Shown: piece after piece, positions 9,338-19,400 of the stretch
Layout: every line of letters begins with the position of its first letter
Numbering within the stretch: the first letter of the stretch is position 1
DNA from: Cyanophora paradoxa CCMP329
Lineage: Eukaryota; Plantae; Glaucophyta
Length of the DNA: 64,000 bases
Direction: 5' to 3'
Assembly (NCBI GenBank): GCA_004431415.1
Contig: QPMI01000610.1
Span: 306,074-370,073 of the forward strand
Made by a program: the position numbers and the translations under genes
Notes under the pieces: generated by a model
Database searches by the model: none
What the model was told of the DNA's origin: nothing
Seen by the model: the letters and a program-made list of their open reading frames with translations, nothing else

Positions 9338-11290
9338 ATGCCGTGGTGCGTGGAGGCGCCGGAAGGCGGCAGGCTGCACGTGCTACTTCCCGTGCGCGCC
9401 CGCCCAGGCGGCGTTAATCTCGCCCCCTGAGCGCCCCTGCAGAAGCGCACTTACGTCGTCGGGCGCAAAGGTGCGAATCAATGCGTAGCTAATTCCGAGA
9501 GCTGACTGTTCTCGTGGCTCGGCAGACTGCGACATCCCGCTGGGCGGCGATGCCTGCGACAAGTCCGTATCGAGACAGCACCTCAAAATCTCCATCGGGA
9601 ACGCTCCGCCCGAGACGCTTCAGGATCCCAACGCAAGACCTTCGATCTTCGCGGAGGACACTAGGTCCTGCGCCCAACAAACTTGAAAAGATAGTGCTCA
9701 CTCGAGCGAGCAGTAAGTTCGGGTCGTCCTTCGACGGCGTGGCGGTGCCAAAACACGCACAGTTGGAGATTAAAGATGGAACTTTGAACCTGGGCACGGG
9801 CAACACCCGGGCTCGGTGATCCAACTTTCTCTGTCGTGTTCTCGGAAATCATGACTTACTCATTGATCATCGCAGAGTGTTCTTCACACCGCTTTGCTTC
9901 TCAACATCGCTTCTGAACAAAGAGCAGCAAGCGTCACTGAAGGCTATGTGTGCCGAGATGGGCGCCGCGCTTCACGCAAACTGGAAGCCAGGGGCCTGTG
10001 TGCATCACTATTTGGTGATGAACGAGCTCCAGGTCACAACGTGAGCACGCATGCCCGAGAATTTTGCAGGTTAATGCTGATCCAAAGCAGTAAGGTGCTA
10101 TCGGCACTACTTGACGCAAAGCCGATCGTGAATGTCGGGTATCTAGAAGCTATTCTCCGGGGTTCAGAAAGCACTGCATTGTGGGATCCACAAAAGTGTG
10201 CCTTTTTTTCGTCATTGAAGACTATTTTATACTAAATATTTGCACAGCTTTCTTCCACCAATCAATTCAACTCTTTTAGGGGAGAACTTCGACTTCAGCC
10301 CAAGGCAAGACAGGCAGACCATGTTCTCTGGGCGGCGCTTCGTTTTCCTTGATTCAAATACAGTGTGCCTTCGGTCTTGCTTGTCTTGTTTACACGGCAC
10401 ACTCATTCAAATGCGACCAGGCCAAGAAGCTCGAGCAGGTTGCAAGAGCCGCTGGAGCACAGACCGTCCACTGTTTCAATTCCAATCTACCTGACGATAT
10501 GGTGCGTTCTTGAGGCCCCATCACGCACTCTTCTAACGCCATCTCCGGCAGATCTATGATCCAAATACCGCCTTCTTCGAAAGTGGCGATCAAGCAGTGC
10601 AAACACTATGTGAACAGCTGGGAAGTCGAGGAGGCCTGATTGTATCAGAAGCCACATTTTCATCAAGGTATTGGGGCTTTATTTTTAATCCGCTTCCCTC
10701 TTCTGCTTGAATCTCATGGTACTTCTTGCTGCTTCAAGCGTTCTTCAAGTGGATGACTCTATGGTCTTTCCAACACATCGGCCAAAGATCAGGCACACAA
10801 TGCCCTCCAGCATATCTGCCAGCCAGCATCTTGTTTCTGCATCTAGCCAAGCAGAGCGAGTGCCTTCTCGTACCTTGAAGCCAGTGGGAGCTGCCGCGGC
10901 TGCTTCGAACACTTCCCAGTCTCAGAGTGCAGCTGCAGCAAGTAGCAGTCGGGTGCAGGAGAGCACCAGGAGCTTCGTCGCCTCGCATTTCGCACGTTCA
11001 AGTAGCTCCACTGCAAAGAGTAAAGCCAAGCGGTGCCTTGTGCAGATGCCAAAGCAATTGATTGCGAAGCTGGTCAATTCACTGTGTCGTGTGCAGTACT
11101 GCAATTAACGTGGACGAGCTGGAATCCAAGGATGGCGTTGTGGAAGCAGAGCTCGTAGTTGTTCCACCAGATCCAAGAACAAGGAACTTCAAGCGCTTCA
11201 AGAAGCATGCGGCTGCCGGCCAGCAGCCCGAGTTCCCAAGGCCTGTTGTCAGGCTGACTTTCTTTGAGGAGCAGAAAGAGGAGAAATGAA
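9338..11290 (+). CDS. NBS1: Nibrin/NBS1 (FHA + tandem BRCT + Mre11-binding motif)
   Basis: Spliced FHA motifs YVVGRK, DKSVSRQH, DTSKFGS; BRCT motifs HYLVMNELQVTTKVLSALLDAKPIV, FLPPI, RQTMFSGRRFVF; C-terminal NFKRFKK Mre11-interaction motif. Confidence 0.88.
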
Positions 11291-11396
11291 GAGAGAGGAG
11301 AACTATTCCGCTCTCGATTATTGTTTGCTCGAGACTTACAACAGCCTGTTGAATTCATAATCAGGGGCCCTAGAACACAAGCCCAAGCGCCGCTGT

Positions 11397-13366
11397 CTAC
11401 TTCTTGCCGCCACCAGCCACGTTGAACTTGAAGAAGATGATGTCACCGTCCTCCACAACGTACTCCTTGCCCTGCTGCCGGTACTTGCCTGCTGCCTTGA
11501 CTGCTGCTTCGTTGCCTGCCTCCTTGAACTCGTCGTACTTCATAACTGCACAACTGGCGTTAGGCATCTGAAGCAAACGGACATTATCAATAGCAAAGAT
11601 GCTTACCCTCTGCACAAATGAAGCCCTTCTCGAAGTCTGTGTGAATGACACCAGCAGCCTGTGGTGCCTTCGTGCCTTTCTGCAACGCGATCTTCTAAGC
11701 TTGGAAGAAATGCCAAGTTTGAAACAGCAAACGAACCCGGATAGTCCAGCACTTCACCTCGTCTGTGCCACAGGTGAAGAAGTGGATGAGCTGGATGGCA
11801 GAGTATCTGTGCCAAACAGTGAGTCCGTGTGCAAGGAAGTTCGAAAACAAGAGACGGACCCCTGCTTGGCGATCTTGCCAAGAGAAGACTGGGCCTTCTT
11901 CTCTTCGAGGTACTTCTTCGCGTCCTCCTCTTCCATATCCTGCAGCTTGCCCTCCAGAGCACCCGAGAAGGGGATCATGAGGCCACCGCCGTGAGAGTCC
12001 ACGTACTCCTTGATCTTGACGAGCCTGCCGCGTATTGCGTTTGTCAAGCTAGCTGTGTGGAAGATTGATTTGGAAAGCTTACCACTTGTTCTTCTTCTGA
12101 ATGTAGTTGTCCTCGCTGACGTTGATCAGGTAGACGACCGGCTTGGCCGTCAAGCAGAACTGTGCGTTGACAGTGTCCAGCTGCGCAAGCGCTTGTAAGC
12201 ACACACGACATGCAAATACAGTGCAGCACCGCAGCAGACCTCAGCCATCTTCCAATCGCAGGCGCTGATCCACTTTCCTGCGTTCAGTTGCTCGAGCATC
12301 TTGCTCACGATGTCAAGCTCCGCCTTCTGAGCCTTGTTGTTGGGCTGCTTCTTGAGGGCAGACTCGAGACCCTCCTTCGTCTTCGTGAGCTGCAGAGCGA
12401 CGCAATCAGTTACTGATAGCTTAAATCTTGTGTGTGTCAGCAGACCATTTCAACATCCTTGGCTATCAACTCGCCCGAGATCTGCCACAGAGATCACTTT
12501 TGGACGCGTTCAATGGGATCCGCACAGAACAAAGGCGCACAATCTCGCAGTCGCGGATGGGATCGATGCCACCCTCGACGTGAGTAACCTCGGTGTCCTC
12601 GAAAGCGCCTGGGAGCGAGTTTAAAAACGGCCTGGCAAGGCAGCAGTCACTTACGAAGCACGTGGAAGATGCCATCGACACCGCGGATGTGCGAGAGGAA
12701 AGCGTTGCCAAGGCCCTGGCCCTGGGCAGCTCCCTTGACGAGCCCGGCGATGTCGACGACCTCGAGGAACGCCGGCACTTCCGACTTCGGCTTCCAGTGC
12801 TCGCAGAGCCAAGTGAAGCGCTCATCCGGCACGTTGATGCTGCGCGGCTCCGTGAGTACGCGGCGAGCGCGGCTGGCTAGAACTGTGTGCACCGCGCCGC
12901 GTTGGGGTCGATTGTGCAGAACGGGAAGCTGCGAGCGAGCGTGCATCGCGAACGTTAGCTACGCTCGTTAAAAGCGCTCTGTGGGCTCGGCGCACTCTGC
13001 GGACGCGGTCAGCTACGCATCGATCGCGCTCGCGCATGCCGCAGGGACGCACTCTCGGCGGGAATGCGCAGCTTAGTCATTGCATTGAAAAGCGTCGACT
13101 TGCCGACGTTGGGAAGGCCTTCGGCGGGCGCGCGCAGTCAGCGATGGTGAAATCTCTCCGGTGGGCGGCGCGCAGGTCTCACCAACGATACCGATCTGTC
13201 AAGCGGTGCGTTGCGGAGGCGACTGCAGTCAGCAGGGCCGCGGCGGCTCGCGGACGGCGGTTCGAGCCACGAGGAGTGCGGCTCGCCCGGCGGGCACCTT
13301 CAGGTTGCTGGAGAAGCGGCCCAGGATCGGGCGCTGCTCCGGCGCTTCGGCCTTCTTGGGAGGCAT
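11397..13366 (-). CDS. OLA1: Obg-like ATPase 1 (YchF family)
   Basis: MPPKK...[89 protein letters not shown]. Includes 13-nt and 1-nt microexons. Confidence 0.98.
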
Positions 13367-13490
13367 GTCTTGGCAAGCTTGGCGAACAAAGTGAACTGCG
13401 TACCCCTCCGCCCGGCAGCCCAGGCAGCTTGCGGGGCAGAAGGCTGGGGACTGCATTTCAACGGGCAGGAAAAGGAGACGCTGTGCTAGG

Positions 13491-16400
13491 CTAGGCTACT
13501 GGGGCGATACGCTGGGTGACGACCTGGCGCGGATCGCGGAACATGTCAAAGGTGCCGTCGAGCGCATCGCCGAGGAGGCCGAAGAGGACGCGCTCCAGGA
13601 CGCCCTCCGCGAGCCCCTCGAATTCGGGCATCGCGCGGATGAGCGTCTCCTGCCGCTCCGCCTCCGCCGCCGCCGCCGCCGCCTCGATCAGGGCCGTCGC
13701 CGCACCGGCCTCCTCGAGCGCCGGTAGCCGCGCGTGCGCGGCGCCGCCGTCGGCGATGTTGAGCGCGGGGGCAGCGACGAGGGGCGGGGAGGGCGCCGTG
13801 GGGGCGGGGGACGGGGCAGAGCTGATGACGAGGGACGGGGGCGCCTGGGGCCGGAGGGAGGCGCGGGAGGGGGTGCGGGGGGTCTCGGGGCGGCTCGGGG
13901 GCGCGGAGGCGAGCTGGAGGAAGAAGGGGATGGGCTCCTCGTCGAGGCTGCGGAGGGCCGTGCCGACGATCGGCTCCCTCAGGAGCTCCTGGAAGAGCCC
14001 GAGCAGCACGCCCTGCGCCACCGCCTGCGCCCCGCCCCGTTTCCCGTTGGCCCGGGCCCGGGCGGGGCGGCCAAGGGCGGGCGCGACGCACCACCTCGTC
14101 TTGCGAGCGCTCGGCGGGGCCCGGGGCGGGGCCGCCGACGGAGCGCGCCGAGGCGGAGCTTGCCAGGGCGGCGACGCTGGGCGCACGCGCAGGCTGCCTC
14201 CGCTCGAGCCCGAGCCGGCGGGGCCGCCCAGGCTCTCGGCCGCAGCGCGGGGGCGAAGCGGGGCTGGGAGGGGGCGGCGGCGGGCGCGGGGCGGCGGGCC
14301 GGAGCTTGGGCACGAAGACGGGCGAGGTGTCGAAGTCGCGGGCGGCGCAGGCCTCGCGCGAGAGGACCCGCAGCTCGACGCGCACCGAGACGGCGTGGAA
14401 GCCGGCAGCCGCCGCTGGCGTCGCCGGGTCGGGCGAGGCGGCCCCCGAGCGGGCGCTGCCGGCCGTCCTGCCCAGGGAGGCCTGCGTGGCGGCGGGGCCG
14501 GGGCCGCCGGCGGAGCGGGCGGCGAGGGAGGCGGAGAAGCGGGAGGCGGAGGTGACGACGGTGACGTGGCGGGCGGGGCCCCGCGCCGCCGTGGAGCGCA
14601 GGCCCGAGGCGCCCATCGAGCCGGCCCCCGAGCGCATCGTCCCGTTCGCCAGCCCGCCTGACTCCATCAGCTCCTCCTCCGGCGGAGCCGCCAGCGGCGC
14701 GGCGGCCGACCGGTGCGTCGCCGTCGCTGTCGTCGCCATCGACATCGCGTGCTGCGGCTTGGGCGTCGGCCCACAAACAGCGGCGGGGCGGAGGCGGCGG
14801 GCGAGCGGGGCTCACGTGGGGCGTCTTGGCGGGGGAGACGTCGCAGAAGAGGTCGGCGACGTGGGCGCAGGGCCCGGGCGTGGCGGTGAGGACGAGGAGG
14901 GCGTTGAGGCGGGCGCCGGCCTCCAGCTCGCCCTCGGCCGGCTCGACGCGGAGGCCCTGCTGGAAGAGCGGGTGGTCCCGCCGCCAGGCGAAGCGGACGG
15001 CGTGCGCGGAGGCGTTGTGGAGGAGCAGCAGGCGGCGGTGCACGGAGAGGGGCGGGACCTCCCCGAACGAGACCCGCTCGTGCGAGAGGTACAGCGCCTG
15101 CGTCGGCACCCGCAGCAGCTGCCGCTCCGGCGGGCCCGCCACCGCCCCCGGTGCCCCCGCCCCCGCCGCCTCCTCCGCGGGGGCCGCCTCCTGCTGCTGC
15201 TGCTTCGGGTGGTAGCCCCTCGCCACGAGCCGCGTGACGTAGACGTCGCCTCCGGCGATCCGGACTGGCACCGGCACCTCGTACGTCTTGGCTGTGCGCG
15301 GCGAGGCACGGCCGATCAGCGGGCCGCCGCGCGGCGCGGCGCGGTGGCGGGGGTGGGGAAGGCACCCTCAAGGGGCCGGAAGAGCCAGCGGAGGAAGGCG
15401 CGGCCGCGGGGCGGCAGGGTCCCCCGCGGGTTCTCGCACCGCAGCACCTCGAACCCGTACGACTCTGCACCCCCCCGCCCCTCGAACGTTCGGCCGGGCG
15501 AGCGCGGCGCGGGGGCGGCCGGCGGCGGGCGGGCGGACCCTCGCGGAGGCGCTCGACGGCGGCCGTGTCGATCTCGTACTCGAGGGGCGCGGCAGAGCCG
15601 CTGAGGAGCTCGACGGACTGCAGCACGGGCGTCTGCTCGCCGATCGCCACCGGGGCGAGCTCGACGACCTCGGGGAACATGTCGAGGACGCGCTCCTCGG
15701 GCCCCAGCGTGCGGCCCGTCAGCTGCAGCAGCGCGCTCTTCCCGTCCAGCAGCTGCAGGTGCACGGGGCACGTGTGCGTCCCCGGGAACTTGCGGTGGTG
15801 CGTGAGGGAGACGCGGGCCGTCTCGCCGGGGGCGAGGACGCCCTGGCGGGGACGGGCGTCGAAGAGGTCGTGCTCCATGACGAACGCGAGCTGCTTCTCC
15901 TCGGCGGTGCGCTCGGCGAGGTCCACCCAGCGCTCCACGTCCGCCTCCGTCTCGGCGGGGAAGCGGAGGGCCCAGCTGACGGGGATGACGCCCGTGTTGC
16001 GCAGCAGGACGTGCACGCGCGTCGGCGGGCCCTCCAGCTGCCCGCTCCCGAAGTCGAAGACGGCGCTCGCCAGGCCGCCCAGCGCCTCCTCCCGCCCCTT
16101 CGAGTTGCCCCCCGACGTGTTCAGCCGCACCTGCCGGCGCCGCCGCGTCAGACGAGGCAGAGGGGGACGGGGAGGAGGGAGGCGGGCCTCGTCGTGGGTG
16201 AGGTCGCCGGTGAGGGCCGCGTTGATGGCGTCCACGGCGAGCATGCGCCAGACCTGCGCCAGGCTGTACCCCTCCCCGCGCACGTCCGCGATCTGCGCCG
16301 TCGGGTACGAGGCCGTCGCCCGCAGCAGCGACTCGGCGGAGAAGACCGCAGCGTCGGGGCCCTGCCCGGGCCCCAGCGCCGCCTCCAGCGCCGCCGCGCT

Positions 16401-19400
16401 CGCCGAGTAGACCACCCGCAGCGCGAACGCGTACCGCCCGCCTGCGCCCCGCGCGCGTCGGCGGGGCGACGGCGGGGGCGGAGCGGAGGGGGCGCGGCGC
16501 ACGCTTGCGGGGCCGGAAGGCGAGGATGACGTCCTGGCGGGTGCCGGCGGCGATGACGCCCTGGGCCGGCGAGAACTCGACGACGCCCTTCGGCGCGCTT
16601 GGGGCGTTCTCGTCGAAGGCCGAGGGCCCCGTGCGGACGGAGAGCCACGTGGAGGAGACTCGCCCGTTCTCGCCGCTCGGGGCCGCGTCGTCGTCGCCCT
16701 CGGCGCGGCGCTCGAACTCGAGGCGGAAGTACATGGCGCACTGCCCGCGGTTGACGACGGCAAAGGTATGGAGGCGCTTGGAGCCGACGAGGACGCCGCC
16801 GAGGTCGAGCTCCTGCGGGTCGAACTCGAGCCAGCCGGTGGTCCCCTCGGCGACCAGCGAGACGGCGACGCGCTCCGAGGAGCGGCCCGAGGCTGAAGAG
16901 AGGGTCGACCGCAGCGAGAGCGCCGCCGTCGTCCCCGTCCCCGACGCCGTCGGCGCGCCCGCAGGGGCCCCCACGGGCGTCGCCAGGCACTGCAGCTTGG
17001 CCTCGTAGAGCTTGGCGGCCGAGGGGGCGAAGGTCCACTGCACGGCCTGCGCCTCGTTGCCGAGGAGGGTGCCGGAGCGCGGCTCGACGGAGAGGACGCC
17101 GGCGAGGCGGTGCGGGATCTCCCAATGGAACTGCACGGGGATCCGCGACGGGTTCGCGATCGTCAGCGGCCGCGTCGAGGCGCCCCCGACGCAGGTCGGC
17201 TTGAAGACCAGCTGCCCGTCCCCGTCCACCCGGATCCGCGCCACGTGCCCTGCGCCCCGCACCCACGCTTCGCACCGGGAGGGACGGGCGGGCAGCGGGG
17301 CCAGAGGGGGCGGGGCGCACCCTGCCCGGAGAGGGAGACCTCCTGGGCGCTGCTGGCGTTCCCGTTGAAGACGCAGCGGAGGACGCGCTCGTAGTTCTTC
17401 GCCTTGGCCGGCGTGAACCGCACGGCGATGAGCACGAGCTCGCCGGCGGGGACGAGGCCCGTGCGCGGCAAGCACTCGAAGACGCCCGACGGGTCGTGCT
17501 GCAGCTGGAAGCGCGCCGGCGTGTCCGCGCGGTTGTAGATCGCGAGCGTCTCGTGCGCCCGGTCCCCGACGTGCACGGGCGGGAAGCGGAGCACGCGCTG
17601 CCCGAAGGCGCAGTCGGGCGGGAACTGCTCGAGCTCCGGGGGGAAGGTGTGCCCCGCGAAGACGGGCGCCAGGCACCAGGGCGGGACGAAGGCGTCGTCG
17701 GTGACGAGGCGGAAGTTGCGCATCGTCTTGACGTACGCGTAGCACTCGACCTGCCCGCAGAAGGTCTGCATCTCCTTGCGGGGCTGGAAGACGGCGCGGA
17801 AGGCCATCGTGCTGCTCGGCTTCACGTCCGCGCTGCTCGGGATCACAGCGAAGGGCGCCTCGGCCCCCTCCGGCGGCGCCCACATGCACGTGATCTTCGC
17901 GGCGCCCCGGTTCGTCACTGCGCGGCGCCGCCGTCAGCGGCCGGCCGCGCCGGGGCGGGGCGGGGCGGGGCGGGGCGCGAGCGGGGGCCGCGCGGGGCGC
18001 GCCGTGGATGGTGCGGGGCTCGTTGGCGCGGTACTTGCTCCCCGGGCCGAAGTCGAGCTCGGCCTCCTCGAGGGCGACCTCGAGCCGCGCGTCCGTGTCC
18101 TCCACGAAGAGCTGCCGGCCCCGGCCCGGGCCTGAGCGGGGCGCCCGCGCGAGGCCGGCCGGGCCGGCCGGCGCACCTCGGACCACGTGTCGAGGGGCGC
18201 CTCCTCGCGGGGGGCCTCCCCCTCGGGGAGCGGGAGCGGGAGCCGCCGGCTGCGGTGACGCTTCACGTGCCGCTCGTCGAAGGGCGCCGGCCGCCGCGTC
18301 TCGTCGAAGCACGTCCCGAACAGGTCGATGTACTGCATCGAATGAGGGGGGCGGCGTGTGGGCGGGCGGCGAGGGGGGGCGGGAGGGCGCGCGGGGCGGG
18401 CGCACGAGGGGCCGCTGGTGGTGGACGAGGCAGTAGACGCGGCGGAGGTAGTTGCACGGCTCCGGCGGGGCGAACTTGACCATAAAGGAGACGGAGGACT
18501 GCGGGTTGATCGTCCCGCTCGTCCTGCTGAACCGGAAGACCCCGTTCCGCTCCGCCTGGAAGTGGAACGCCGCCGCCACGTCCGAGTTGTTCTGCGCGCC
18601 CGGGAGGGCTCAGCGGGCCGCCAGACCCGAGGCCGGGGCCGGGGCCGGGGCCGGGGCGCGGGGGCGGGGGGCGGGGGCGCACGTAGATGGTGACGGCGCG
18701 GGACTGGGAGCTGCCGGCCTGGACGTCGCCGAAGTTGAGGGAGGGGGCGGAGAGGGAGACGCTGGGCCCGATGGCCGTCCCCCGGCACGTCACCCGGATC
18801 GTGTTCCCCCCCGGCGTCGAGATGTCGTAGTGCTCCGCCGAGAAGGTCCCCGTGGAGGGCGGGCTGTACCGCACCCGCAGCGCGACGGAGCCCTCGGGCC
18901 CGACGACGCCCCTCGTCGGCGTGAAGGCGAAGTCCTCGTCGTGGGCGCCCCCGCCCTCGACGCGGGCGACGGCCCAGCTCGCCCCGACGATCGACTGGTT
19001 CCGGAAGACGAGCTCCCGCTCCACGCTCTCCCCCGTGTGCACCTCCCCGAAGTCCAGCGTCGCCTCCCGGCACGTCAGGAACGGGTACTTGCCGATGCCC
19101 GTCACCTGGATCCGCCGACTCTCCTCCTCCGCGACGTGGCACACGATCGACGCCACCGAGTTCGAGGCCTCCTGCGCCCCGCCGCTCCCGCGTCGGGTGC
19201 GGCGCGCCTCGCCGTGCCGGGGGCGCGCGCGGGGCGGACCTTGGGGGAGAACTTGATGACGATGCTGCGGGTCTCCCCGGGCTGGAGGAGGCCCCGGGAG
19301 GGGATGACCGTGAACGGTGGCGTCGTGGCGAAGCTGCGATGGCGCCGTCAGGGGCCCGGCGCGCGCGCGGTCGGGCGCGCGGGGCGCTCGCCTGAAGGTC

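Follow-up and report, generated by a model that had tools for sequence, protein, structure and literature searches.

Nuclear one-nucleotide exons are known from the APC11 and VPS55 genes of land plants, which represented the sole conserved clusters of this exon length in a screen of ten species (PMC8831610). The APC11 exon is shared by Arabidopsis with other land plants (Guo and Liu 2015, PMC4674806; Yu et al. 2022, PMC8831610). It was missing from the annotation and was proven by mutations in which the A was changed to T, G or TT or was deleted; the model proposed for its inclusion combines intron definition with a recursive-type sequential removal of the two introns (PMC4674806). The one-nucleotide exon of VPS55 is found throughout the land plants, is alternatively included in some species and has support from RNA-seq as well as RT-PCR (Yu et al. 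2022, PMC8831610). A further case is the CYP621A gene of Fusarium, encoding a rarely expressed P450, in which an apparent intron of double the normal size drew attention to the exon, for which public transcript reads provide support (PMC12940212).

Here we describe a gene of the glaucophyte Cyanophora paradoxa CCMP329 that encodes an Obg-like ATPase 1 (OLA1/YchF) and in which a single A on the minus strand (position 12996, in the following A12996) very probably represents a constitutive one-nucleotide internal exon between two independent introns of 56 and 67 nt. We assign this reading a probability of about 0.88. All positions refer to the window, i.e. the whole stretch of 64,000 nucleotides that was analysed. 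Papers pairing Cyanophora with the terms microexon or micro-exon were not found in the literature searched.

The locus resembles APC11 in that a single A is placed between AG and GT, in that the reading frame requires this A and in that the cDNA is one letter longer than the two flanking exons. It differs by its compactness, the interval in Arabidopsis comprising 422 nt as compared with introns of 56 and 67 nt in OLA1, as well as by the gene and the lineage concerned. Moreover, the exon of APC11 is supported by mutation whereas that of OLA1 is known from transcript contigs. With VPS55 it shares the character of a one-nucleotide coding microexon, which in VPS55 had likewise been missed by the annotation; however, the VPS55 exon is conserved across the land plants while the two introns of OLA1 are missing from all eight comparator loci. 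As in CYP621A, the exon provides the middle base of a codon within a conserved motif and lies between two short introns close to the median size of the organism. The exon base of CYP621A is a G in the context AGGGT, whereas OLA1, an expressed housekeeping ATPase, carries an A in the context AGAGT.

Two other kinds of arrangement are related to the present one. Zero-nucleotide recursive sites, also termed ratchet points, are found in very long introns of Drosophila and vertebrates and leave nothing in the mRNA. They resemble the OLA1 site in that the acceptor directly precedes a donor, so that a 5' splice site is formed anew once the upstream part has been removed, which would be the likely logic in OLA1 as well if its upstream intron were removed first. 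Unlike recursive sites, OLA1 keeps one nucleotide and both of its introns are shorter than 70 nt. Since the A between AG and GT is retained, the OLA1 site is not a zero-nucleotide recursive site. In the stwintrons of fungi an internal intron interrupts the donor, the branch site or the acceptor of an external intron. The likeness consists in short introns, neighbouring or nested, that are spliced in two consecutive reactions. The OLA1 pair is nevertheless not a stwintron because its introns lie side by side and no splice signal is interrupted.

The coding sequence of OLA1 extends over positions 11397 to 13366 on the minus strand, from the start codon ATG (13366-13364) to the stop codon TAG (11399-11397), and consists of 14 exons and 13 introns. 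Each exon was searched individually, and the frame was verified across successive exons by scripted phase tracking. It comprises 392 codons, compared with 392 to 396 residues in the PDB homologues. The top PDB matches of the exons were the OLA1 structures 7y9i, 5ee0 and 2ohf and the YchF structures 1ni3 and 1jal, the nearest structural homologues being plant OLA1s. For instance, an exon of 61 amino acids matched 7y9i with an E-value of 6.7e-29 and also 5ee0, 1ni3 and 2ohf. Furthermore, the Pfam families MMR_HSR1 and YchF-GTPase_C, the latter a C-terminal TGS-like domain, were matched by exon pieces in collinear order, with three successive pieces corresponding to the positions 1-18, 19-42 and 44-84 of the profile PF06071. 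The exon translation includes the P-loop as LPNVGKST, so that the motif GxPNVGKS is present, and the DxxG motif of switch II. The G4 motif reads NVSE, the exon 12180-12083 containing ATC AAC GTC AGC GAG GAC (I-N-V-S-E-D). The replacement of NKxD by NxxE at G4 is a mark of the YchF/OLA1 family. Based on the PDB matches, the order of the Pfam domains and the G4 motif, the gene is assigned by its sequence to the OLA1/YchF subfamily of the Obg-like P-loop NTPases.

All 13 introns start with GT, and the donors GTGCGT and GTGCGC recur among them. Their lengths range from 46 to 102 nt, 12 of the 13 lying within 46 to 67 nt. The genome of Cyanophora paradoxa, with about 100 Mb and 67.6% GC, has been reported to contain 9.2 introns per gene, the mean intron length being 86 bp, and its gene models have been described as needing manual curation (PMC6704402).

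The region of interest begins with exon 3 (13053-13118, 66 nt, minus strand), which ends with ATT CCC GCC GAG A, i.e. with the first A of an Asn codon, and whose translation of 21 amino acids aligns to the residues 32-52 of 7y9i. It is followed by intron A (12997-13052, 56 nt, minus strand) with the donor GTGCGT, the acceptor CGCAG and a branch box CTGAC at 13012-13008, the branch A of which is located 12 nt before the 3' splice site. The one-nucleotide exon (12996-12996, minus strand) contributes the second base of AAC, the Asn codon in PAE-N-FPFCT. Intron B (12929-12995, 67 nt, minus strand) has the donor GTGCGC, the acceptor TCGCAG and a branch box CTAAC at 12958-12954, which places the branch A 26 nt upstream of the 3' splice site. 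Exon 5 (12893-12928, 36 nt, minus strand) completes the Asn codon with its final C and contains the switch-I/G2 motif FPFCT; it reads C TTC CCG TTC TGC ACA ATC GAC CCC AAC GCG GCG CG and has a translation of 11 amino acids. The flanks of A12996 are thus complete (CTGAC..CGCAG/A/GTGCGC..CTAAC..TCGCAG, with slashes marking splice sites), each intron having its own donor, CTRAC branch box and CAG acceptor. Rereading of the positions 13066-12915 confirmed the minus-strand layout, the coordinates, both intron lengths and the signals that had been proposed in the original prediction.

Phase tracking revealed that the frame remains open over the 392 codons if A12996 is included. Without the A, as in a gene model treating the 124 nt as one intron, the frame shifts after residue 52 and meets a stop after 150 codons, so that the proposed frame break by a single intron was reproduced. 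The spacing of the homologous proteins agrees with the inclusion of one additional A. Exon 3 ends at residue 52 of 7y9i and the exon of 61 amino acids starts at residue 66; the 13 residues between them correspond to the N, the 11 residues of exon 5 and an Arg (R) whose codon is split, and the same count was obtained for 5ee0. The homologues read IPAENFPFCTI(E/D)PN or AENYPFCT uninterruptedly, and the A provides just the Asn of PAENFPFCT, thereby restoring the conserved YchF motif as had been predicted.

Sequencing runs were screened for sampled words of the gene. All sampled words occurred in 14 runs (13 DNA-like runs and X1), and about 40% of them in six runs, as is expected if only exons are represented. 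For the positions 11300-13500 we compared the contigs of the RNA-like runs X15, X16 and X19, which originate from three studies, and of X1, a 2012 run of unlabelled kind that was taken as DNA. The RNA status of X15, X16 and X19 is a predicted label which is supported by their contigs being devoid of all 13 introns: each of the three runs contains one contig that skips every OLA1 intron with GT..AG ends. Since all 13 introns are missing there and the DNA run has no such joints, these contigs are regarded as cDNA. In every listed exon piece they show 0 letters deviating from the window. Introns A and B are missing from all of them. At the joint 12928/13053 the three contigs skip 124 nt and carry one letter between the two sides, a T on the plus strand and hence an A on the gene strand. 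The mature mRNA accordingly reads GAGAACTTC at this joint (GAGA-A-CTTC on the gene strand), which is the cDNA that the original prediction had called for and which the spliced contigs of X15, X16 and X19 all contain.

The same contigs contain a second small exon, a microexon of 13 nt with the sequence ATCGGTATCGTTG (I-G-I-V-G; 13183-13195, minus strand), which is located just before the P-loop between introns of 102 and 64 nt and is consistent with the frame according to phase tracking. The RNA contigs of the three runs carry AACGATACCGAT between 13119 and 13298. This microexon serves as an internal control, indicating that letters found between the two sides of a joint represent real small exons.

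The position of the additional A was deduced by an exhaustive enumeration of cuts. No single excision (0) reproduces the cDNA, and the nucleotide at the joint of the mRNA does not adjoin either flanking exon in the genomic sequence. Among the 29 solutions with two excisions, only two have canonical ends, and the combination of GT-AG with GT-AG is obtained for A12996 only. The other canonical placement, and thus the sole other canonical two-intron route to the observed cDNA, is the A at 12978 (12978-12978, minus strand; cacag/A/gcgctt), which would be reached via a GT-AG intron of 74 nt and a subsequent GC-AG intron of 49 nt. Both lengths are tolerable, and the cDNA of the contigs is by itself equally compatible with A12996 and A12978. 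However, this route requires the poor GC donor GCGCTT in a gene in which 13 of 13 introns start with GT and GTGCG recurs, and it leaves the perfect junction CGCAG/A/GTGCGC as well as the CTGAC box 12 nt before the acceptor unused, so that we consider it very unlikely. The exon is therefore placed at 12996, where both introns are GT-AG introns, as befits a gene with GT at the start of all 13, and possess their own CTRAC boxes. When the window was scanned loosely for YAG-N-GTRMG accompanied by a donor and an acceptor at the distance of an intron, 3 matches were obtained as compared with 3.05 in shuffled sequences. The layout by itself is therefore no evidence, and the remaining matches of the scan are probably due to chance; what raises the finding above this level is the reading frame, together with the spacing of the homologues and the cDNA contigs. 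The claim that two introns flank a single A and split the Asn codon into A, A and C is supported.

The same cDNA would also arise if the genome truly read GAGAA/GT and one A were missing from the assembly or the strain, in which case the 124 nt would be a single intron, and long-read assemblies do have single-base deletions. Over the positions 11300-13500 the DNA contig of X1 nevertheless shows 0 differences, 0 gaps and no joints in comparison with the window; X1 possibly derives from the same strain as the assembly and is then an independent sequencing data set but not an independent organism. Because this short-read contig is identical to the window across the whole gene, no A appears to have been lost in the assembly, and the extra genomic A at 13053 that had been named as the observation speaking against the exon was not found. 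In addition, every sampled word is present in 13 further DNA-like runs, the site is not a homopolymer, and a 124-nt intron would be about twice the usual size in OLA1 and would contain a complete acceptor-plus-donor junction by coincidence. A missing genomic A thus seems even less probable than the use of A12978. Least credible of all is a post-transcriptional addition of the A by insertional RNA editing or slippage, or its origin from a paralogue or retrocopy. This explanation accounts for just the bare fact that the cDNA is one letter longer than the two flanking exons, whereas the RNA contigs match the OLA1 locus in every listed exon piece, an intron-less copy is absent from the DNA run and the locus itself offers a templated A bordered by perfect splice sites. 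To our knowledge, single-A insertion editing of nuclear transcripts has not been described in such organisms.

Splicing at A12996 would thus proceed by removal of two normal-sized spliceosomal introns on either side of the A, the Asn codon being assembled from three exons. The OLA1 introns are presumably recognised by intron definition because each of them has a length of 46 to 102 nt and an exon of one base is useless for exon definition. Introns A and B are probably removed one after the other, since U1 pairing (-3 to +6) with the intron B donor would extend over the acceptor AG of intron A, and two spliceosomes could hardly occupy the site together. Removal of intron A first would create the site GAGAA/GTGCGC and removal of intron B first the site CGCAG/ACTTCC, both of which are legitimate. 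The upstream-first order is somewhat favoured (about 60:40), given that intron A is complete 68 nt earlier in transcription. An RNA structure bridging the splice sites was not indicated, as the fold of the positions 13066-12915 was no stabler than those of shuffled sequences (z = 0.09). Strict intron definition with sequential splicing can reasonably be inferred from the layout, and this stepwise, intron-defined mode equals the model put forward for APC11 of Arabidopsis.

The Asn codon is uninterrupted in eight of eight comparator loci (L001-L008), comprising one fish chromosome and seven eukaryotic contigs from metagenomes or read assemblies, altogether about six different organisms. Several of these loci contain introns elsewhere, e.g. 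inside NVG/KS or after FPFCT(I/V). The NVG/KS intron in the P-loop codons is common to L005, L006 and L008 (the fish and two eukaryotes) and missing in OLA1 of Cyanophora, which instead splits IVG/LP and the Asn codon. These differing sites suggest an extensive turnover of intron positions within the G domain. Owing to the absence of both introns from the eight comparator loci, introns A and B appear to have been gained in this lineage, their distance of one base being a coincidence in a very intron-dense genome. A search for close relatives with the neighbouring exon of 61 amino acids gave no match above 83% identity.

An origin of the two introns by duplication was considered and rejected. 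The alignment of A and B scored 39 as compared with 32.5 +/- 4.5 in shuffled sequences, 9.7% of which were as good, and a further copy of intron A or B was not found within the window. Given this dissimilarity and the lack of other copies in the window, there is no sign of a tandem duplication or an introner family.

Some features of the surroundings were observed in addition. The window is GC-rich and contains many introns of 46 to 102 nt. The GC content amounts to 47-56% over the positions 9500-12500, including the 3' half of OLA1, vs. 62-66% over 12500-13500 with its 5' part, and to 74-83% over 13500-17000, within the adjacent gene on the minus strand, which contains very long open frames (e.g. 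15316-18579). The change in composition is sharp. In a p24 gene a candidate 2-nt exon TT is located at 2633-2634 on the plus strand (region 2560-2705), and its sequence layout is that of OLA1 (CTTGACG/GTGCGT..CGCAG/TT/GTGCGT..GCTGCAG/CCATCTC). The RNA contigs of X15 and X19 extend about 1.5 kb past the 3' end of OLA1 (record positions 1-1563), and a second RNA contig covers 13372-13500, its overlap with the OLA1 contig reaching the 5' end of the latter at 13391. Transcripts of adjacent genes thus abut or overlap, as has been reported for Cyanophora (PMC6704402).

After APC11, VPS55 and CYP621A, the three gene families for which the literature examined describes nuclear one-nucleotide exons, OLA1 would be the fourth, and its exon would be the first from a lineage other than land plants and fungi. 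It adjoins the switch-I motif in a universally conserved, well-expressed housekeeping gene. That two complete introns of less than 70 nt can be removed accurately with one base between them argues for stepwise, intron-defined splicing since exon definition cannot explain a spacing of one base. Given the absence from the eight comparator loci, the case also documents two apparent intron gains one base apart. Tentatively, and with rather less than even confidence, we consider that Cyanophora may routinely splice exons of 1-2 nt, which would then form a genome-wide class of dozens to hundreds, in contrast to the two conserved one-nucleotide clusters of the land plants. The candidate in the p24 gene is a lead in this direction. 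The number of introns in the genome is roughly 240,000, and a geometric length distribution would give an estimate of about 1% of internal exons at a mean exon length near 84-130 nt. If this is true, Cyanophora would offer a natural system for studying the minimal exon size and the ordering of abutting introns, and many public gene models would be frameshifted.
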